Source: Epithemia pelagica (lineage: Eukaryota > Protista > Bacillariophyta). From it: a stretch of 64,000 nucleotides of DNA. The translations under genes were made by a program, and so were the position numbers. Every line of letters begins with the position of its first letter. Positions within the stretch are counted from its first letter, which is position 1. Positions 16,063-42,020 of the stretch are shown in pieces. The notes beneath the pieces are model-generated. The model had not been told where the DNA came from and did no database searches. It saw only the letters and a program-made list of their open reading frames with translations. The stretch spans positions 5,084,001-5,148,000 of the forward strand of contig OX337229.1 in the NCBI GenBank assembly GCA_946965045.2, given 5' to 3'.

Positions 16063-19000
16063 ATGGATCCTCAATCACCCAAGACACCTACGACTCCTAA
16101 GGGAGAAGATAACCAAGACAATGTCTCGGACACAGACCTATTCGACCACATCATATTTACTGTCTGCCAATTCTTCACCAAAGAAAGGGCCGACTACTTA
16201 ATGAAGTGGATGAAATACCATGGTTTTGAGAACATTACTCATGTTATCTCGTATATGCAAACTAATACCGAGGAATCCATGAAGGAACTGACACAATACA
16301 AGGTCAACAAACAGACACATGATCTGCAAGGCCCTACAAGACAGCAGATCAAGCTCTTGGCTTATTGGGCCACATACAAGACCAATGAAATTCAAGACGA
16401 GCTATCCAATAGCGACTGGATGAACCTAACGAGGAAAGAGTTCAACACTTGGAGGATCAACACAGATTTCTCTAAGGGACCACCTAGCCAAGTCCCAGTC
16501 TCGCCAATGAAGTCACCGTCATCTGTGAAATCTGTCAGCACAGTTACTGCCGCATCCCAATCTCAACAAGACCTTACAGCATTCAGAAAGGGAACTAAGC
16601 GCGACGCAACTGCATATGAGGTATTCAAGGATGAACGATACTACGATTCATTCTGGCGTGTATTCAAGACTACAGCTAAGGCTCAAGGCCTATCCAACGT
16701 TCTGAATTTCAAATACACACCACCCCATGATGATGAATATGCCGAAGAACTTTTTCAAGAGCAACAAATATTTCTTTACTCCGTTCTTGTCCGTATCATT
16801 CAGACTGATCAAGGTCGAGCCTATGTACGTGAACATGAACATGATGAAGATGCGCGTGCCGTATTGCAGAAGTTACACTCTTTGCATACCGAATCCGACC
16901 TAGCAAAGCGAGAAGTCCTCCGCTTAACCAACTACATTTCCAATCTACGTCTTGACGACACATGGCGCGGAACAACACGTCAATTTCTTCTACACTTTCA
17001 AGAGCAGCTACGTTTGCTAGACAATTTAGTGACATTGTCTGATCGCATCCCTGATCATACCAGGATGACCTTCCTCATGCAAGCTGTAGAAAAGGTACCT
17101 GATCTCCGCCGAGTCAAGATCTTGGATAATGTGGTGAACACCAAATCCGGTGCAAAATCCCTTTGCTATCAATCATACTTCCGTCTCCTTCTAGACGCAG
17201 CTTATGACCATGATCAAGCAACCCAGTCATCTGTTCATAGTCGCCGTCGACATGTCAAACAACATGAATCACTATATGGCCAAGATACAGATGCTGACAT
17301 AACCTCACAAGATGATATGGAGTATCATGTCCACAACACCAAAGTGACATCTGAATCTCCATCCTCTTCGTCCAAGGTTAGTCTACCGCGTGACCTATGG
17401 TTCAAACTTTCTGAAGAAGATCGCAAGTTGATCATTGAGTATAACAAGATGATTCAAGCACCTTCATCAACAACACCGAGGACAGTGCAAACACATGCCC
17501 TCGACATTGATCCGGAACCTGATCCTGACCCCAACCAAGTTGCATCTGATGACGACTCACCTGGCGTAGTCCCTGAGCATTCAGATGATTCAGATCCGGT
17601 TACACAATTTATCAACCAAGCCATGACGACTGATATCAATCACCCGGCAACTGACCTGACTAGTGTTCTTTCTAACGCCAAGTCCAAGACAAGCAAGAAG
17701 GTTACTTTCAAAGCCAACATGCATAAACAAGCAGGACATGTCCCACGCTATCTGTTTTCCAGGAAATCTACTTTACCAGGGAATCAATTGATTGACCGTG
17801 GTGCTAATGGAGGACTTGCTGGTTCTGACATGCGCATCCTTTCTAAGACTGGCCGTCATATCACTATTGTGGGTATTGATAACCATGAACTTACTGGACT
17901 TCCTGTCGTCACATGTGCCGCAAAGTTTGAGACCAATGATGGACCTATTGTCGGCATCTTCAATGAATATGCTTATTATGGGAAGGGCTTATCTATCCAT
18001 GCTCCTGGTCAATTCGAGCATTTCGGACTTGCTGTTGATGAACGATCTGTTAAAGTTGATGGTAAACAACGCATCACTACACTTGATGGTCGTGCCATAC
18101 CCCTTCACATCAAGGATGGGTTAGCCTACATCCACTCCTTGGGTATCCCCAGCGACGATGACATGGATACCTTACCTCAGATCATCTTCACGTCACCCGA
18201 CACATGGGATCCTGGTGTTCTGGACCATTCGTATTCTCCCACACCCTCTGACAATGATCCTGATTGGAAACACGTTAAGACTGATGGTAGTATGTCGAAC
18301 CACCCATATGACAACTATGGGGAGTATACTGATCGTGTTGTTTGTAACCTCAATCTCCTTTTGGATCTCCCATATGATCATGGACCTGACGACGCACCCT
18401 TCTTTTCTATCTATGCTGACGCAGAAGGTAATGATCCTACACTTCATGCCTCTGTCCACCGTCGTTACCAGGAAGCGTATGACTGGAAGAAGTTCCGTCC
18501 ATTCTTTGGTTGGCAATCTGAAGATGTTATTGCCGATACGTTCAAGCACACTACACGTAATGGTAGCATTACTTTTGACCACGACACCCTCAAGAAACAT
18601 TTCAAGGCTCGCAATCCGGTCCTTAATATACCTCGACGTCATGAACCCGTTGCTACTGACTCGGTTTTCTCCGACACCCCTGCTGTTGACCATGGCGGTA
18701 AAGTCGCACAAATCTTTGTTGGTCGCGATACTCTGGTTACTGATATCTATGGGATCAAGTCAACCAAACAGTTTGTCAATACTCTCCAGGATAACATCCG
18801 GTTTCGTGGTGCCATGGAGACCCTTATCAGTGATGGTGGTTCATCTCTCATCTCTCAAAAGGTCAAAGACATTCTTCGCACTTTGCTTATTGGGGAGTAT
18901 CGATCTGAACCTTATCATCAACACCAGAATAAGGCTGAAAACCGTTATCAGACCGTTAAACGTATGACCAACGCTCTCATGAATGCCACTGGTTGCCCTG

Positions 19001-31106: not shown

Positions 31107-34100
31107 ATGTCGTCGTCATCATCTTCCACCATGATTACACCACCCCGAAATTCATCGTCGTCTCGATCCACACCGTCGGCTCCTCGGAAACGATCCCTAA
31201 TACCATCGTTTCGCAAAAGCACCAAGAACCAGTCGACCCTGGCCTCTCCAACGACACCTACGGGTAGTCGACGTGGCTTGTCATCGTCGTTGCGACGATT
31301 GCCCGCATCGCTCAGTGAGAGCACGGCAGCCTTGTTTGTGCATCCACCGGATGTGGAAGAACCAGAGGGCGAATGGAAGAAACAAGAGATGCATTCAACA
31401 GAAGAACAACCAGGAGACCCGTCCGGCGTGGACTCTTTGCCCTTGTCGTCATCGCCAGTTCGACGATCCATGATACCATCCTTCACCACAAGGAGTAGCA
31501 ACAACAACAATAACAAGAAAAGCGACAACGACAAGCCCCATTCGTCATCTCCCGTCAAAATGTCCACACCCACTCGACAAACGCGTCCGACTTCGGCTGG
31601 GAGGCGATTGCCAGAATCCTTAACCGCAAGTACTACCGCTTTGTTTGTCGAACCATTGGATCTGGAGGGCAACGAGCCACTGCAAAACCAAAAGGAGAAG
31701 AAGAGCTCCATGGACCCCAACAAGAGTGTCGATCCAAACCAACCACAACCGCAAACTACCAACAACAACAACCACGATCCTCCCATGTCTCCCTCCCCCT
31801 CCAGTCCTCCGGGACGGATGGTAAGGGACGAATCGTTTGGACCCATGGAGGAGGAAGGAGAAGGCAACCCTAATAATAATAGCCTCTCGGTCATGATGAT
31901 GAGTCCTCGTCCGGACGATGACACGGACGATCAAGCCAGTCGGTCCAGTGACATGAGTCTCAGCGTTCGATTTCGCATGACCGAAGAACGGTTTGACCGC
32001 CGTTTGTCGTCCTTTTATCACAAGACCAGCAATAACAGCGGGCTGGTGCCAACCAAGGATGGTTCCGCCGAACTTATGGACTCGTACTATGATGATGACG
32101 ATGACGATGATGTGGACAAGCATGATTTGGATGACCTACAGCGACAATTGGATAAAGCGGCTCAAGAATTCATGTTTTTACAAGACAAGGATGAGGAGGA
32201 ACCAGAGAAGAACAACAAGAACGAACTACCAGACGAGCAACCTGGTGTTTCGCATAGCGACGAACCAGACTCTCGCCAACCATTGCCTGAGACGACAAAC
32301 GACCCTTCATCCAAGACTGCGGTACCCTTCCCTCGCAAAGCAAGCAATGGGCGCATTCCGTCACTTACGTATTCTTCCGCATCTTCGTCATCCTTTTCCG
32401 TACCGCCTCTTTCGACCATTACTCATGTGAAACAAACCTCATCCAAGCAACTCTCTGGGCAAGTGGACAAAACCGCCGACAGTGGCAACAGCAAGGATTA
32501 TTGGGTTATTCCAGTGAAAAGTGTGGGAACAGGAGGAGACACTGGTAGTACAGGAGGGGGAGATTTGAGTTGCCACAGTGACTTTACACCCGAAGAATTG
32601 GATGAAACCAACGTCCTGGAGCTTGAGCTCATGGAAGATGAAGACGATGAACCTGTCGAATTGAGAGACGATCAAAGCATTGACATGTTACGACCACCCA
32701 GCACGACGCCCAGCGATATTACCAATGATAACAGCGTTCCTCATTTGGTCGAGTTGGGATGGGTCTCCAAGGACAATCTTGATACCAATGACAACAGCGT
32801 TCCTCATTTGGCCGAATTGGGATGGGTCTCCATGGACAATCTTGATGGTTCCAGTTCACATGTTCCGGAGGAACCCACAACAACGACCACTACACCGGAC
32901 ATGGAGAAGAATGCACCGCGCCGAGATGACGATCCATCCGAAACGGAACCATTCTCAATGTCCAAGTTGGCAGCTCACAGCAAAAAGGAACGACATCCAA
33001 CTTGGTTCACTCGTTTGCCAACGAGTGACACGACAGCACCAAGTACAGATATTCAATCCTCCGCTCAAAAACCATCCAATTCCATGCAGTCGCCGGACAA
33101 CTTAGAGTCAGTAACGCAATCTCCACAAGATGCCGTCAATGAGCTGTCCACACAAGGTACGAACCGTTGATGACTGGTCTATTTACACCCATTGATTCGT
33201 TGCTAACAAATGCTTCTTTCTTTGCTTGAGTCAGCCAAACAAGAGACAGACAGCCTTACTCAAACACCAGTAAACGAAAAGCCAATTAATGCAGTTTCGG
33301 CCAAGAGCATTGGGTCGCTTTCCTTGGATGAAAATTCAAACGATACCGACGACAAAGGTGAACAAGAGTGCAACAAGGCAGTCTCTGCCAAAAGCATTGG
33401 GTCACTCTCCATGGACGATGTGCAAGAAAATGAGCAACATGAAGCGGAAGGAAGTCTGGAGGAGTGCACGACGACGGCTGTTGCGGCCAGGAGCATGGGT
33501 GCCTTGTCCATGGATGACATGGATACGTCCGAGGAGGAAGATGAAGAAGATGCTGAAGAGGAGGCTTCGGAGGAAGCAGCTTCTTCAGAATCTGAGCCAC
33601 CCCCTCGAACAAAACCTGTGCGTCGGTACTCTGGTAATATCCCAACCATGGAAACTATTCTTGAAAGCGACGATGGGGAACCCAGCCATGAAAGTAGCAG
33701 CAGCGACTCCGATTCTGATTCCACCAGTGGGAAACAGGATAAACGGCCCTCTTCTGAAACCCCTTCTTCGAGTAGCGCTACATTGGAATCATCGTTGTTC
33801 TCATTGGAGCGATCGATGCGTTGGAACGGTATTGAAGATTGCGGTGATTTCATCGACCTCGAAGGACCGTCGAAGAAATCGAACCGCAGTATCTGGTTTA
33901 TGGCAGGCCTTATTTTGGCCATGTCGGTACTAGCCGTCATTGTTCCTGTCGCGCATTATTACTTGCAGCCAGCACCGTATCGGAAACGGTTCAAACGCAA
34001 TAGCCGTATGCTCGTCGTAGACCATGGTCCGACGGCATCGCGTCCGCAACAGCAACAAGCAGAGCAGTTGGAAACCAGCAAAGCAAAGCCCGCATCCGCA

Positions 34101-34364
34101 AGCGCATCTTCAACATCATCGACCGCTCCTGCGGATTGTACAGATGAGCAAGTGTCAAGCGACAGGGTGCAGAAGGAAACTCAATACCACACAGAGCAAG
34201 AAGAACCAGAAACAAAGACATCAAGTCCATTGATGTCAAAGGTGCCCGTCAATGATTTCGAGACAAAAGATAGCGAAACCGAAGTTTCGGAAGAAGAGAG
34301 GCCTCATCGGCGTTGGACGTGCCAAGTTTTGGGACGACATCGTTGCCCTTCGTGGGGAAAGTAG
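31107..34364 (+). CDS. Large acidic, Ser-rich single-pass membrane protein (cluster member A1), 2 exons, ~1059 aa
   Basis: Exons 31107-33156 and 33235-34364 (GTACGA..CAG, branch CTAAC). TM segment IWFMAGLILAMSVLAVIVPVAHYYL, then RFKRNSRMLVVD and C-terminal RRWTCQVLGRHRCPSWGK*. Confidence 0.85.
32721..32846 (+). repeat. Intragenic 63-bp (21-aa) tandem duplication in A1
   Basis: TNDNSVPHLVELGWVSKDNLD followed by TNDNSVPHLAELGWVSMDNLD. Confidence 0.93.
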
Positions 34365-35560: not shown

Positions 35561-36961
35561 ATGATTTGCCAACCGAGTAATTCCAGGTTTGCTGCCAACC
35601 GATGTCGTTCGACCAGTATGTCGACAACTGCAACATCAAAAGGAGACTTTCCTACTTTGCAAGAGGAAGAAGAAGAAGAAGAACAAATCTCTTTTCCTCA
35701 TAAGAAAACGTCAACACCTGCGAGCGTGCGCCCATGCTTTCGGATTGGAGCGCTGTTTCAACTGGATCCACGAAGACGGAACAAGTCTTTGCCGTCGTTT
35801 CATCGTTCAGCTCCCATTGTTGTCACCCTTCGATACTATCACAATGGCGATAAAGATGATCGTGGCAGTACCCTTACCGCTCCGCGACATTCAAGAACAT
35901 CGATACATTCCGACACAACGGAGCTTCCTTCCAGTGAGAATGTTGGTAAAGGCTGGACTGTGAAAGAGCAAACCATGTTGGTTCGATTGGATGATCGCGC
36001 AGCCATGCTTTATCAACGCGTGGTGCAAGCGCTACATTTCGAGTCCGTCCAAGAGTTCGACTTGATACGATTCGTGCCACGTCCAGCCGAGTCCGAACCA
36101 ATGCAAAGAAAGGAGCAACCACAAGACTTGGTACAAAACGAGAAACGTCAAGCAACAACGACAATATGTCATCAAGCAGAGCAAAACAACCATTTGAACG
36201 AGACCACCGACCTGGAATGTATAGCATCCACCTCAGCGTTGGTCGCGATACCTCGTACGCGACGTATCCGGCTCAACAAGGTTTTTCAGCCAGTGGCGGA
36301 ACAGCAACAGCAACACCCGTCTCGATCGTCGCAAGGGTCCGCTTCTTCCGCATCATCACTGTGGTCATGGTATACTTACTCTCTTGTTGAAAATACCAAC
36401 AGCAGTGACAGTCTCTCCTCTGTGAATCACAGGAATTCCTTTGTCGTGTTGGTCGTTCAGCGATCTCCTTCAAGGAAAACCAACCATGCGTCCACGGCCG
36501 GTCCTGGTCCTCTACCAACCCAAACACCGCCCAGCAAAAGCGTTTATATGACAACCTCCGAGCCGACAGAGAGTTGTGATTGTGCTTCTTCCATTAGCAT
36601 TGCTGCCACGGCAGGAGATGCGCGCTCCAGAAAAGGATCAATAGAAACAAATTGTGTATGCAGCGGCAGTGAAGACGCACAAGAACAACGGGGGCAAGGG
36701 AATGAACGGCAACAACCACGGGCTTCCTGTTGCATGTTGCATAGTTCTGCTGAAAAAGCAAGGTACCTAGCTGCAACGAGCACGAATGGAAACGAAATCA
36801 ACGGTTCATCGTTCATCACGAACATTCCGATACACATTGAATTCCGAAGGAAAGATGCATCTCCTTTCAACAAGAACTCACAGATTTCTTCGTGTAGTCA
36901 ACCTCAGGGTCCGAGTGTGTCTTGTCATCTTCTCGGCGACAAGATCCCAGAAGATGAATGA
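35561..36961 (+). CDS. Hypothetical protein (466 aa; start may be ~35618)
   Basis: Long clean ORF, mostly low complexity with one ordered-looking segment (IVVTLRYY..MLVRLDDRAAMLYQRVVQALHF..FDLIRF). No family recognised. Confidence 0.6.
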   Translation: MICQPSNSRFAANRCRSTSMSTTATSKGDFPTLQEEEEEEEQISFPHKKTSTPASVRPCFRIGALFQLDPRRRNKSLPSFHRSAPIVVTLRYYHNGDKDDRGSTLTAPRHSRTSIHSDTTELPSSENVGKGWTVKEQTMLVRLDDRAAMLYQRVVQALHFESVQEFDLIRFVPRPAESEPMQRKEQPQDLVQNEKRQATTTICHQAEQNNHLNETTDLECIASTSALVAIPRTRRIRLNKVFQPVAEQQQQHPSRSSQGSASSASSLWSWYTYSLVENTNSSDSLSSVNHRNSFVVLVVQRSPSRKTNHASTAGPGPLPTQTPPSKSVYMTTSEPTESCDCASSISIAATAGDARSRKGSIETNCVCSGSEDAQEQRGQGNERQQPRASCCMLHSSAEKARYLAATSTNGNEINGSSFITNIPIHIEFRRKDASPFNKNSQISSCSQPQGPSVSCHLLGDKIPEDE

Positions 36962-38585
36962 CGGACTTCACTGTCTAAGTAGAGTGTATGACCGGAAAAG
37001 TCTTTGGACAAAATCTTGGGGGTTGGCTGTATATATCATCAATCTGCAGTCACATTGAGCCAAAGACTCGTTATTCCCCACATGTTGGAGACAGCCAGTT
37101 GCCAGACGCTGCTATGTGAGCGACAAGGCAAGCAATTAGGTTCGACTATTTTGAGACACTCATATTAGGAGTATTTTGGCGCCTGCCGTCGAACGTAAAC
37201 TAGATCCTTTCCATGTCGTTTTTCTTTCCATGTAAAATCAACATTGCATGTCTGATTCTTTCTTCCCCATGTTTCTTGAAATCGTCAATGTTGTGTTGGT
37301 GTTGGCAGTAATGGGCTTCAAACTTCAAAGCGATGATCGGACAAGACACAACTATGTGCTCGTTGAGGCGCGACTGATCCTTGTTTCGTCCGCAAGGACG
37401 CACGGCGGGCCATTTAAAAGAATCGTTCCACACATATTCATGGCAAACACAACAATTTGGCAATGTTACTTGGTCAGCATCCAGCATAAGGATCGTCCTG
37501 TACAAGGTTTGCAGTAAAAATACTCTGGAGTTTCCCATGTGTGGTTCGAGGGGACACATAGACATATTGATGAGCAAAAGGACAGCCACAGCGTATGACT
37601 TGCGACGAGAATCCAAAGTCAGATAGATGTGATCCACTGAAGCTTTCCCAAGTAGCAATGAATTGCAACAGGTGGTGTCAACACCTTTCCGAGAGACTGT
37701 GATATCAATATACAGTGACCACAAGTCTTTTGAATATGGCCATTGGAAGCGGGAACTCTATCGGTGGACGCTTCTGCGGCCTGAAATATGAGGCTGAGAC
37801 GTCATGGAATATATTTTCTCAGGGATCTGGCACAGTGACACTAACAGGTTCATCTTTGTAGGATTTTCTGTTCGCTAGCATTATCACAAACGATTCAGTC
37901 GCAAAATCTACGTCAGTCGGTCATTGTTTCGGACGAAAACTACCACCTCAAACACTTCGTATTACCCGCCATCATGACGAAAAATGATTTGTGGCACAAT
38001 AGCCTATCTTGTCGAAAGCACAAGCTTTTCCTTCCGCTTAGTCCAACAGGAGTTTAGAGTTGTTCAATGTCTTCGCATTCATGGACGAAGAATTACAAGA
38101 ATTTTTACGCGACCCATTGGCGTTTCAAGATGTGACATCATTGGCGTGAGATGCGACGTCATGTAGCAAAGTCAGTCGCACGAAGGAAGAGGAAAAAACT
38201 TGGGAAACGTTTGCTGTCTGCTTGAACGTCGCATCGGAGACGATGATATCGCCTTCTTCAGATTCGTCGAAGCACTGAGTCAGTGAAGTACTGATTGGAC
38301 TATTGGTAATTTGTAATGTGTTGAGGCGGAGGAGTCGCCTCTCGAAGTCGAAGAGCAAGAAGGTTGCGACAGGAAATCGGAAGCACATGAAGACATGGAT
38401 GCATCTGACGGCCCTCATTTTCAATGCGTGGCGGCGGCAACAACTCCGCACGTAAATCGAATCTACTTTCTCTCCTCGTGTTGACAAACATGACAAATCC
38501 ACTTTGCATTCATTTCAAACCGAGAATAATAATTATTGTTCTGGGACGCACCTTATTTTGAAAACGGAGTAGAACCCAAGTAACA

Positions 38586-39239
38586 ATGGCAATGGCAGTT
38601 GCCTCGTGCGCCAAAGCAACGACGTCTAGTGCAGATTTCATTGCTACTCCATCCGAGTTGGCCGAGTTAGATTGGACGGATGAATTCACTCAAGCCCTTT
38701 CGCATGATTTGTTGTCATGGTGGTTGACCTCGTCTGTACTTTCCCAGCACAAGCCAAAATCGAAACTACCCAACCACGATAGCAACTGTAACAACAAGAA
38801 TGGTGAAACTTTCACACGGCCCGCCTCTTCGACAGCTGCAACCACATTGGTCAGTCGTCGTGCTTCGTTGCGCTATGTGGGATTTGGACAGTGGACTCAA
38901 GTGCTGAGCGTTTCTCCCCGACCATCCCTCTTGTCCACCTACTTTGTGGCAATTCTTCCCCCTTCCTCCCCCAATTCACGGAAGCAGCGGATCGTACCAA
39001 GATTGCCAGTCACATCTTCGAGTTCCACAAGGCGTCCACCGACTCAAGTTGTGGTGGTACGCAAGCGTCAAACGATGGCCTCTGCAAGGCGTCCACCGAC
39101 TCAAGTTGTGGTTGTTCACAAGCGCCAAACCACAGCACCAGTTCAACCACATCAACCAAAACCAAAAATGGCTGCTGATACTGATTTTCAAGAATTAGAC
39201 TCTCTCGTTTGGTTGGATGCCGGTAACCACGAGGACAAG

Positions 39240-39272
<33 letters not shown>

Positions 39273-39701
39273 CCAGCAAACCAAGATGAAGACGAAGCTG
39301 TTGTACAACAAATGCTGCAACAATGGGAACACGAACTTGGAGTAATGGTAACAAAGGAAAGTAAACAGCAGTGCTCTAAGACCGTCAAGAAATCCTCGAG
39401 GCAAGACAGTCAGTTTTATCATCCTCCAACCCACCTTCATCATCAACACAACAGCCAGGGGTCAATTTTGTGGATATTTCTCTTTTGGATGTGGATTGTT
39501 TCCATGACTCTCACTGGCTGGTTTGAAATGGATGATCACTCTGTTTCTTCTTCATCGTCGTCTGCTTCACCAGGAAGGACAACAACCACTACTCGGTCCA
39601 GGTCCCATCACCACCACCACCACCACAATTCCAAAGATGTGCCGGAACGATTCAAGCGTAACAGTCGCATGCTGGTGGTGGATCCCAAAGCGAGCCGGTA
39701 G
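38586..39701 (+). CDS. Single-pass membrane protein (cluster member A2), 371 aa
   Basis: TM segment SILWIFLFWMWIVSMTLTGWFEM, His run, RFKRNSRMLVVD close to the C-terminus, and an internal 20-aa repeat RRPPTQVVVV(R/H)KRQT x2. Confidence 0.8.
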
Positions 39702-40497
39702 CCCCATGCAGACGGAACGGCGTGGCACAACTGGGGAATTCACATGGACGTTTCCAGGGTGCTACCATTCCCGCTTCTTCATGTTGATTGATTCCTTGCA
39801 ATCCCGTACACCTGTTGCTGGCTCGACAGCAGGATTTCCGGTACTTGTCCCAATAAAAGGGAGCCTCGAGTGGTCTTTCCCGTTATGTTCAAAGCATGAC
39901 TTGGTCCTCAAGTGTCATTTTCACACGGACTTGCATTGAATTTAGTTTGATGGCATTCCCCCTACGGAAACCTCTTGTTCAGAACAAGAAGCGATCACAC
40001 GCAAAGCACTTGCCATTCCTAGGTTGGAATCAACGAGACACATCCGACCTCATCTCCCATCGCTCCGATAGAAGCTAGGTACTCCTAGAAAGAATCACAA
40101 AAGTTAGGTGAAAGATAGACATGAGTTTCTTGTTTCTTCTCTCTCTTCCCAAAAGACATTCTAGATTGCCTGTCATGGTGTACCCGTCGTTGGAAAACGT
40201 GTGATTGTGTGCAGCGATGTGACTGCTTTGAAAATGGCTGGTAGAGCAAAGTCAACAATGAGACGCAATCTCGTCGCAGAATATCAACCGGTAGTTACCT
40301 TTGCACTAATCAATAGGGTAATCCTAGTTCATTAGAGTTAACTTTTCTTTTCTAAAATACATTTCTAAAAATTGTGCACTTTTTGACATTTGCTTCTCTA
40401 AGATACCTGGGATCGTTCCTCCTCCGTCGGTTCAACACAACGAGTGTCAATGCCAAGGCCTCTTCTCTTTCAATTTCAGTGGGGCGTAACAATGCAT

Positions 40498-41730
40498 CTA
40501 GTTCACCCTGTCTCGCCCTCCCCAAGAAGGACACCTGTGGCGACCGAGAACTTTGCACGTCCAACGTCTCTGAGGACCCGTTTCGATGCTGCTCTCGAGA
40601 ATTCCAACTTGAACTACCTCCTCTTCATCAGTAGTCAAATCATGATCTTCGAGCTCTTCCTCTTGTTCTTCAACGTTTGGTCCTTGATTGCGTCTATCTA
40701 CAACCAACATGCGACTGTTTCTCTTGAATCGTTTGTGTTCGACTGGCACTGGTTCTGGTGCTGTGGTGGTGGCTTGCGGCATGTCGACCTCGTCAACGTC
40801 TTCTTCCATGTTCATCTCTTGCACATCCACGGCAAGAACCGTCTCGGTTTGTACGACCTGTACAGTCTTGTGATCTTCTTCTTCATGGACCAAAACTCCA
40901 CCAAGCCCAGACACAGCCAAAGCAGAAGTAAGAATTGCAACAAGGAAAGTTACGACCATCAAGTACCAGACCATTGATCTGGACTTTCTTTCAATCTTGT
41001 CGGTACTCCTTGCCATACCCACATCCTTCATTGTGATTTCTTCATCTTGTTCGAAAGCAACGGAATCCACATCACCTAGATGTGGAGTGACTTGAAAGAC
41101 ATCTTCGGACAGTTCGAACTTGATGAGGACTTCCGCAGGGACACAACTGCTCTCACTTTGTTCTGTTGTCTTGGAGGTGTTCATTGTCTCTTGTGATTGC
41201 AAGTACTCCTCCTTGTTCGGTTCTTCATCTTTTTCACCGTACGTAACAAGAGAGGTTGTACTACTGCACACTGTTGTTGTCTCATCCATCTCTTGCATCT
41301 CTTGTTGCTTCACTGTTTCCCCTTCTCCTGGGATGTCGATGTGATCTACAGGGGTACTAACAGTAAAATCTTGTGATGCTTGTTCCAACTCTCGTCTTAG
41401 GTCCAAGAGGTAGTTCTCCTGATGCTTGGCAGAGTCATCATCCTCAGATCGGAATGAAAAGTCATCTTCACTGCTAGAAGCGCTCAAGCTGGTCATGTTA
41501 GTGGGGCTTGGAGGTGACCCTAACCCTTGGTAAAACGACGTGAGGTGTTGATCGATTCTCCTCTCCGTCAAACGAAACCGGCCTCGCAGACTCAGTTGTT
41601 CTTCTTGATCACTTGTCGTGCTGGTTCGAGTCGTTTGGCTAAGTTCGTCTTCTTGTGGCTTCATGGGGGCAGACGATCGGAGGTCCGTCGTGGTGTCCGT
41701 TTCCATTTGATGGTTTAGTTCGAGTTTCAT
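40498..41730 (-). CDS. Acidic single-pass membrane protein (cluster member A3), 410 aa
   Basis: Shares with A1 RFRLTERRIDQHLTSFY, LDLRRELEQASQDF, a TM segment, RFKRNSRMLVVD and RRWTCKVLGRHRCPSWG. Confidence 0.87.
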   Translation of the reverse strand: MKLELNHQMETDTTTDLRSSAPMKPQEDELSQTTRTSTTSDQEEQLSLRGRFRLTERRIDQHLTSFYQGLGSPPSPTNMTSLSASSSEDDFSFRSEDDDSAKHQENYLLDLRRELEQASQDFTVSTPVDHIDIPGEGETVKQQEMQEMDETTTVCSSTTSLVTYGEKDEEPNKEEYLQSQETMNTSKTTEQSESSCVPAEVLIKFELSEDVFQVTPHLGDVDSVAFEQDEEITMKDVGMARSTDKIERKSRSMVWYLMVVTFLVAILTSALAVSGLGGVLVHEEEDHKTVQVVQTETVLAVDVQEMNMEEDVDEVDMPQATTTAPEPVPVEHKRFKRNSRMLVVDRRNQGPNVEEQEEELEDHDLTTDEEEVVQVGILESSIETGPQRRWTCKVLGRHRCPSWGGRDRVN

Positions 41731-42020
41731 GGCTGCTTCGACTTCGAGTAACTTGTGGATGTCACAGATTTGCTTCTACAATTATTCGTCGCTGAATTTA
41801 TGATCCTTTCGTGGCATTCATCGAATTGGAAAGATGATGGAATCTCTCTGCTGGTGGCAGGTTCTGCATCAGTTTCAAATTGCAGTGGTGTCACCTCCTG
41901 CAGCCGGTCCTTTCGTTGTTTGGATGGGATGCGTTGTTTTGCTTTGCGACCCAACTGGCCTTCGATGAGGTGGTGTCTATGCGACAGCAACAGAGAACAT
42001 AATTCTGTCGCTTCTTCTCA

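Follow-up and report, generated by a model that had tools for sequence, protein, structure and literature searches.

The diatom Epithemia pelagica carries, in three neighbouring genes that we call A1, A2 and A3, one and the same 12-residue peptide, RFKRNSRMLVVD, which we tentatively read as the outward-facing recognition peptide of a membrane-spanning adaptor. The three genes lie in a stretch of 64,000 nucleotides (the window; assembly GCA_946965045.2, contig OX337229.1, positions 5,084,001 to 5,148,000), and the peptide, motif IV in what follows, is one of five conserved islands in their products. As judged from sequence, the genes belong to a domain-less, undescribed family, known here only from the genomes of E. 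pelagica and Epithemia clementina, for which we found no published description or name.

Motif IV is conserved while its codons diverge

Motif IV is encoded in the window by three 36-base stretches (Table 1), which differ from one another only at silent bases (A1/A2, 10; A1/A3, 11; A2/A3, 5) and contain no replacements. An earlier note on this DNA had reported the same peptide in three genes with differently spelled codons, and all three stretches were confirmed exactly as it gave them. Because the differences are all silent, recent gene conversion was ruled out as the source of the identity, which must be held at the protein level. A search of the window with a fully degenerate back-translation of motif IV, allowing up to three mismatches, returned only the three known places, and none of 100 dinucleotide shuffles gave a match.

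A whole-genome pattern search of the assembly (60.5 Mb, 48% G+C) found a fourth paralogue 122 kb downstream, which carries HFRRNGRMLVVD after its membrane helix. The pattern RF[KR]RNSRMLVVD was also found in four genes of E. clementina (GCA_051400955.1, contig JBGMNV010000100.1). Over these eight genes, 9 of the 12 residues never vary, and replacements occur at three positions only, namely R/H at position 1, K/R at position 3 and S/G at position 6, all in two genes. Every degenerate codon is found in two to five spellings, and codon-pair comparisons gave 167 silent and 26 replacing differences. The split between E. pelagica and E. clementina is reported to be up to 35 million years old, and ortholog identities to be like those of human versus pufferfish (PMC12377750). 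With silent change saturated and the species split this old, motif IV stands out in a background that has otherwise been rewritten. These counts support the strong purifying selection on 12 residues that the earlier note had proposed, and make motif IV one of the clearest examples that this genome offers of a short peptide under selection.

Five conserved islands in proteins with a predicted type II topology

When aligned, the proteins share almost nothing beyond the five islands. The consensus of motif I is approximately SLxxxxRxTExxIDxxLxSFY, that of motif II is DLxDLQRELxQA, and motif III is small (VP[ST]EV[VL]). Motif IV, in the wider consensus [KR][KR]F[KR]RN[SG]RMLVVD, is followed mostly by basic or His residues. 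Motif V, RRW[ST]CxVLGRHRCPS, is cationic, contains two cysteines and is present in four of the eight members; its A1 and A3 copies (RRWTCxVLGRHRCPSWG) are identical at 17 of 17 residues and differ at 12 bases. The proteins had been described as otherwise hard to align, which holds for the unalignable flanks of motif IV but not throughout: A1 and A3 also share motif V and the cytosolic motifs I-III.

The order of elements in the members is a long, fast-evolving cytosolic N-terminal region with motifs I-III, a single membrane helix, a variable linker (12-59 residues), motif IV and a final stretch of 5-113 residues, which in half of the members ends in motif V, so that the position of motif IV is free with respect to both the membrane and the C-terminus. 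The predicted luminal part measures 60-135 residues in proteins of 280 to ~1060 residues. Short-tail forms occur in both species, namely A2 in E. pelagica and P0008/P0010 and P0009 in E. clementina.

All members have hydrophilic N-termini, no signal peptide and one strongly hydrophobic segment each, and in those with a complete N-terminus the region ahead of this segment spans ~180-900 residues. When positive charge was compared between the 15 residues before and the 15 residues after the helix, the N-flank was the more basic in seven of the eight members, A1 being the exception. A type II orientation, with the N-terminus cytosolic and the tail carrying motif IV non-cytosolic, is the best prediction from these features, in agreement with the luminal placement suggested in the earlier note.

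In an AlphaFold model of A3, built from a nine-row alignment, the only confident helices were motif I, motif II and the membrane segment. The predicted local distance difference test (pLDDT) score, averaged over blocks of ten residues, was 75, 90 and 83 in the motif I region (residues 41-70) and 81-88 in the motif II region (residues 101-120). Motif IV was modelled without secondary structure at pLDDT ~55, motif V likewise without structure, and the ectodomain as disordered. A SNARE-like reading of motifs I and II was rejected, as they are separated by 25-60 disordered residues and lie far from the membrane helix.

Possible docking or cleavage of motif IV

Conserved islands on both sides of the membrane, joined by linkers that drift freely, led us to read the proteins as membrane-spanning adaptors. 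Motif IV would be the core of a short linear recognition motif in a disordered non-cytosolic tail. A partner that resides in the lumen, on the cell surface or in the space surrounding the endosymbiont would bind this cationic and hydrophobic peptide in extended form, and helices I and II would contact some cytosolic component. Docking would be the mode of action, with no cleavage required. The invariance of N, R, M, L, V, V and D exceeds what protease subsites need, so an extended peptide interface fits; the lack of modelled structure in motif IV, while the helices are confident, is as expected for a linear motif. Short-tail forms exist in both species and a transcript-like contig of A2 keeps its early stop, which suggests that motif IV works without motif V. 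This is the reading that we prefer, although it falls short of being probable.

Non-specific stickiness is an alternative, in which motif IV, with a net charge of about +5 to +6 when its basic flanks are included, adheres to something anionic (the head groups of lipids, wall polymers that are sulfated or carboxylated, silica or the envelope of a bacterium, for example) instead of fitting a particular pocket of a protein. Most members do have basic residues on both sides of the motif, and motif V is cationic as well; yet binding by charge tolerates shuffling and the exchange of K, R and H, whereas N, S, M, L, V, V and D keep both their identity and their order in eight genes whose silent sites are saturated. 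We consider this unlikely.

Several points weigh against the adaptor reading. The binding partner of motif IV is hypothetical, so that docking is an inference, and the outward tail is a topology prediction only. For A1, the charge rule points the opposite way, with the C-flank more basic, because the basic motif IV begins only 12 residues after the helix. Motif IV also fits three protease patterns, the multibasic RFKR, the diatom RXL (RML) and the S1P-like RxLx (RMLV), and the RR before motif V, together with dibasic pairs after the Asp, resembles a prohormone layout.

The charge of A1 would suit a reading in which the tail is cytosolic, through reverse topology or in another membrane system, and KRFKRNSR acts as a basophilic kinase site, as a membrane switch under phospho-regulation or, by way of K-[KR]-x-[KR], as a signal for nuclear import. 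R-x-K-R-x-S agrees with the consensus sites of AGC, PKC and CDPK-type kinases. However, the Ser is replaced by Gly in the fourth paralogue, the N-flank is the more basic in all members but A1, an N-terminus of the length found here is unlikely to be translocated without a signal peptide, and the paired cysteines of motif V suit an oxidising compartment. A cytosolic regulatory motif is accordingly rated as very unlikely.

The protease patterns lead to a close second to the adaptor reading, a real if lesser possibility, in which motif IV is a processing cassette. A cut in the secretory pathway after RFKR, RML or both would set free a small cationic peptide, NSRMLVVD..., and the long-tail forms would yield another, looped by a disulfide, from the part after the RR that precedes motif V. 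The protein would in that case serve as an anchored precursor of peptides; alternatively, the cut would prompt an SPP/SPPL-type protease to release the cytosolic part. In favour of processing, predictions make the site exoplasmic and disordered, and in all eight genes P1 is Arg and no fewer than two of P2, P4 and P6 are basic, so that the convertase pattern, which the earlier note had invoked as R-X-K/R-R, fits on paper. Seven of the eight read R-F-[KR]-R; the fourth paralogue reads R(P6)-L-H-F-R-R, with His at P4 and Arg at P6, and P2 changes only from K to R. Trypsin itself cuts after the P1 Arg of motif IV, and R-M-L-V agrees with the S1P-like RxLx pattern. R-M-L is invariant over the eight genes, and the RXL domains of diatom silica proteins are reported to be removed, by a protease not yet identified (PMC5525289). 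In addition, RR precedes motif V in all four members that have it, a dibasic pair directly follows the final Asp in five of the eight, and the spacers before motif V are variable, being acidic in A1 and A3, the long-tail members of the window.

Against processing, the invariant F (P3), N, M, V, V and D are required by none of these proteases, and the strictest conservation (NSRMLVVD) falls after the proposed RFKR cut. Three members end 5-9 residues past motif IV, so that the released piece would be only 13-17 residues long. The absence of a signal peptide is unlike known RXL proteins and peptide precursors, and conserved cytosolic helices would be unusual in a mere precursor.

Candidate proteases in the genome

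The enzymes that could cut motif IV bear on the same choice. The earlier note had proposed a check for host kexin or furin genes, and none was detected. The convertase P-domain (PF01483) had no match in the 60.5-Mb genome while a control genome was positive, although a very divergent enzyme could escape such a search; the kexin-type pro-domain (PF16470) had no match either, but here the control was silent too. The genome contains about 20 S8 subtilase loci. The P-domain was absent from the nine best S8 open frames, one S8 gene is TPPII, the four that were searched against the PDB were closest to bacterial-type subtilisins, and no S1P orthologue was found among the subtilases checked. The six-frame search recovered SPP/SPPL proteases (at least five loci) and pepsin-like proteases (at least four loci), which, with the S8 loci, are possible enzymes for processing. 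Since the same search recovers other eukaryotic families, the convertase negative carries some weight. Cutting by a furin/kexin convertase makes up only a small part of the processing reading and is in itself highly improbable.

Distribution of the family

Three of the E. clementina genes form a tandem, P0002 (ACA910_013910), P0008/P0010 (_013911) and P0009 (_013912), and P0003 (_013890) lies ~400 kb from it. When 1.84 billion representative proteins were searched exhaustively with a profile, the only true members returned were P0001, P0002 and P0003, P0001 being an allele of A3. Its public model is 99% identical to A3 and begins at the second Met (403 residues). Word searches found relatives in the two Epithemia genomes only. 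A peptide-pattern scan of Joint Genome Institute (JGI) metagenomes returned no relatives, and a DNA-pattern scan of metagenomes returned ten loci, none a true member: nine were orthologues of one unrelated protein and one was a chance match. The nine orthologues (metagenome contigs L033-L041, frames of ~165-220 residues) carry FHRNDRMLVVD, which matches motif IV at 9 of 11 residues. We take this as a coincidence; the second-position codon of the search pattern had been widened, which admitted His.

Pfam searches found no credible family for the four open frames of the window and nothing significant for the helix I-II region, in both cases with no match at E up to 1. A profile search of the PDB with helices I-II gave nothing below E 0.39, and a feature search of the ESM Atlas gave no usable match. 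Four further proteins from the exhaustive search, P0004-P0007, were rejected as relatives. They are repeat proteins, ARM-like by eye, with the unit [RK][RKQE]W[TSG]C.[MIV]L[GA].LA.H occurring many times, and what their successive repeats match is confined to RRWTCxxLG within motif V. We regard their resemblance to motif V as due to chance or as purely helical, and motif V may, going by this resemblance, form an amphipathic helix.

Partial relatives were also observed. A fifth paralogue, a 749-residue open frame (L032 2628-4874, minus strand, equal to G000:C2 ~5219127-5221373), contains motifs I and II as well as long stretches rich in Pro; motifs IV and V were not found in the 6 kb fetched around it. 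Beside the tandem cluster of E. clementina, a 196-residue model (L018 12952-13542, plus strand) has no family motifs other than I and II. As an open frame ~2.6 kb beyond it (16137-16727) contains a hydrophobic helix, the model may be truncated or split. Three extra pattern matches to motif II in the genome of E. pelagica itself were dropped, as they lacked the family motifs.

Gene models and transcription in the window

The coordinates of the three genes and their motifs are collected in Table 1. A1 is most likely a gene of two exons, since the proposed 78-base intron is the only GT/AG pair that keeps the frame at 31107 in phase with the frame at 33237. Its membrane helix has a mean Kyte-Doolittle value of 2.54, the next best window reaching 0.51, and its motif V is conserved in A3, P0002 and P0003. 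Repeats were observed in the cytosolic part of A1, where the 13-residue AVSAKSIGSLS[LM]D occurs twice (33291-33329 and 33378-33416), followed by a weaker third copy, and the 20-residue unit NDNSVPHLxELGWVSxDNLD occurs twice (32724-32783 and 32787-32846), the copies being one residue apart.

Table 1 Features of the A1, A2 and A3 genes in the window.
Feature	Position	Strand	Basis or remark
A1 proposed exon 1	31107..33156	+	Open frame, 683 codons + 1 base; disordered cytosolic region, motifs I and II
A1 proposed intron	33157..33234	+	78 bases, GT..AG, read from sequence
A1 proposed exon 2	33235..34364	+	Motif III, membrane helix, motif IV, acidic spacer, motif V, stop
A1 motif I SLSVRFRMTEERFDRRLSSFY	31956..32018	+	Alignment; equivalent A3 segment is a confident helix in the model
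A1 motif II DLDDLQRQLDKAAQEF	32124..32171	+	Alignment
A1 membrane helix	33897..33953	+	Only strongly hydrophobic 19-residue window
A1 motif IV RFKRNSRMLVVD	33987..34022	+	12 residues past the membrane helix
A1 motif V RRWTCQVLGRHRCPSW	34308..34355	+	Two cysteines; 3 residues (2 counting its Gly) before the stop
Gene A2	38586..39701	+	Open frame, 371 residues, short-tail form without motif V
A2 membrane helix	39459..39515	+	Hydrophobicity
A2 motif IV RFKRNSRMLVVD	39648..39683	+	Back-translation search, codon comparison
Gene A3	40498..41730	-	Single open frame, 410 residues from first ATG; long tail, all five motifs
A3 motif I	41530..41592	-	AlphaFold helix 48-70
A3 motif II	41365..41412	-	AlphaFold helix 100-124
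A3 membrane helix	40906..40962	-	Hydrophobicity; AlphaFold helix 244-274, pLDDT ~91
A3 motif IV RFKRNSRMLVVD	40696..40731	-	59 residues past the membrane helix
A3 motif V RRWTCKVLGRHRCPSW	40522..40569	-	Alignment with A1

Four public runs contain the region, none of them among the runs on record as RNA, and three, which are DNA-like, cover it evenly. The contigs of the fourth, run X4, lie on gene-sized blocks only, 38165-39228 and 39284-40120 over A2 and 40376-41810 over A3; they are absent from 37231-38164 and 40121-40375 and are collinear over A2, through its stop, and over A3. Judged solely from this layout, X4 looks like RNA, and A2 and A3 are probably transcribed. If X4 is read in this way, both are unspliced and the early stop of A2, which lies five residues past motif IV, is real. 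The gap at 39229-39283 is a CAG/CAA run, encoding poly-Gln in A2, where the contigs of all four runs break.

Upstream, a 466-residue open frame without family motifs (35561-36961, plus strand) lies between A1 and A2. A 6.8-kb contig of X4 ends at 37230 and, if collinear, reaches back over A1 to ~30470; A1 and the 466-residue gene may thus have overlapping or read-through transcripts. Among the public runs, 14 single-base differences were observed in 35900-41899, none of them within either of the motif IV copies located there. Run X3 has a 3-base insertion at 40873 (TCT, plus strand), which adds one Glu after the membrane helix of A3, as in P0001, within the acidic run that follows the helix.

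Just past the stop of A2, a +1 frame (39716-39790, plus strand) reads ERR...WTF..C.H.R. It looks like a decayed motif V (RRWTCxVLGRHRC) with a 21-base insertion, and A2 may have lost a long tail through a frame change. That A2 is a decaying pseudogene was ruled out, as the transcript-like contig runs collinearly across the stop of A2 and two genes of the short-tail form are retained in E. clementina.

A possible link to the endosymbiont

Six host-encoded proteins were reported to be enriched in purified diazoplasts of E. clementina (Frail et al., PMC12377750). Three of them, Ec_g12982, Ec_g13000 and Ec_g24166/Ec_g03819, belong to orthogroup OG0000250, which E. clementina has in common only with E. 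pelagica and which is without any domain (PMC12377750). The motif IV family is likewise Epithemia-only, domain-less and multi-copy. Its locus tags, ACA910_013890 and _013910 to _013912, show a spacing of 20, compared with 18 between gene numbers in that paper, and the ratio of tag to gene number is 1.07 in both cases. Tag spacing and shared properties are circumstantial and suggestive only. We therefore consider it possible, but doubtful, that the family is OG0000250 and consists of host-encoded type II proteins in the membrane that surrounds the endosymbiont, with the tail motifs facing the cyanobacterium. The gene nifH is absent from the assembly, which is uninformative, as endosymbiont contigs are usually removed from nuclear assemblies.

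Families common only to both Epithemia genomes are the natural place to search for host functions that emerged together with the nitrogen-fixing endosymbiont (PMC12377750). If the link were true, RFKRNSRMLVVD and RRW[TS]CxVLGRHRCPS would be docked to the cyanobacterial surface or released onto it as peptides, and the cytosolic helices would connect to host machinery, as parts of a host device that holds, positions or controls a very young nitrogen-fixing, organelle-like partner. Motif IV would then be the first concrete, testable host peptide at that interface. If the link were false, the family would still be a compact model of the recognition or processing of membrane-anchored proteins in diatoms.

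Comparison with known systems

Several known systems share part of this organisation. The precursors of plant CLE, IDA and CEP peptides are small, secreted proteins with a signal peptide that cannot be aligned except for a motif of ~12 residues near the C-terminus. The Epithemia family resembles them in being unalignable apart from such a motif, at or near the C-terminus and with a basic residue adjoining its start, and in its clustered genes, but differs in its much larger proteins, its membrane anchor and its conserved cytosolic helices. With ATF6, SREBP and plant bZIP17/28 it shares, going by the predicted topology, a type II orientation, a luminal R-x-hydrophobic-x (RMLV) not far from the membrane and a conserved cytosolic N-terminal part; unlike in these S1P/S2P-dependent factors, no bZIP, bHLH or other effector domain was recognised by Pfam or PDB searches, and the spacing of the site is variable.

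In ITM2B/BRI2 and the TNF-family ligands EDA, BAFF and APRIL, whose stalk is cut by furin, a multibasic R-X-K/R-R lies in the ectodomain of a type II membrane protein, as is predicted for the Epithemia family. In the case of BRI2, the piece set free is a small C-terminal peptide with a disulfide, and the stub is then cut by SPPL2; SPP/SPPL genes are present in this genome. The Epithemia proteins, however, have no BRICHOS or TNF-homology domain and no Pfam match, and the furin/kexin-type enzyme was not detected. The diatom RXL proteins (silaffins, cingulins and silicanin-1) share an R-x-L in a basic setting and the context of the diatom secretory pathway. In those proteins the RXL domain comes immediately after an N-terminal signal peptide, whereas the Epithemia family has a signal anchor, with the motif 12-59 residues beyond it as a 12-residue block, and no silica-protein composition is evident.

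KASH peptides, finally, sit at the extreme C-terminus, ~10-40 residues past the helix, and need a free end (PPPX or similar), whereas motif IV is internal, lacks PPPX and sequence similarity, and occurs in proteins whose ends are not conserved; nor is a nuclear-envelope location indicated for the Epithemia family. The likeness to the KASH proteins of the LINC complex lies in the type II or tail-anchored topology, here a predicted one, the large variable cytosolic part, the short conserved luminal peptide by which the family is mainly recognised and which in KASH docks as an extended strand to SUN, and the logic of bridging a membrane.

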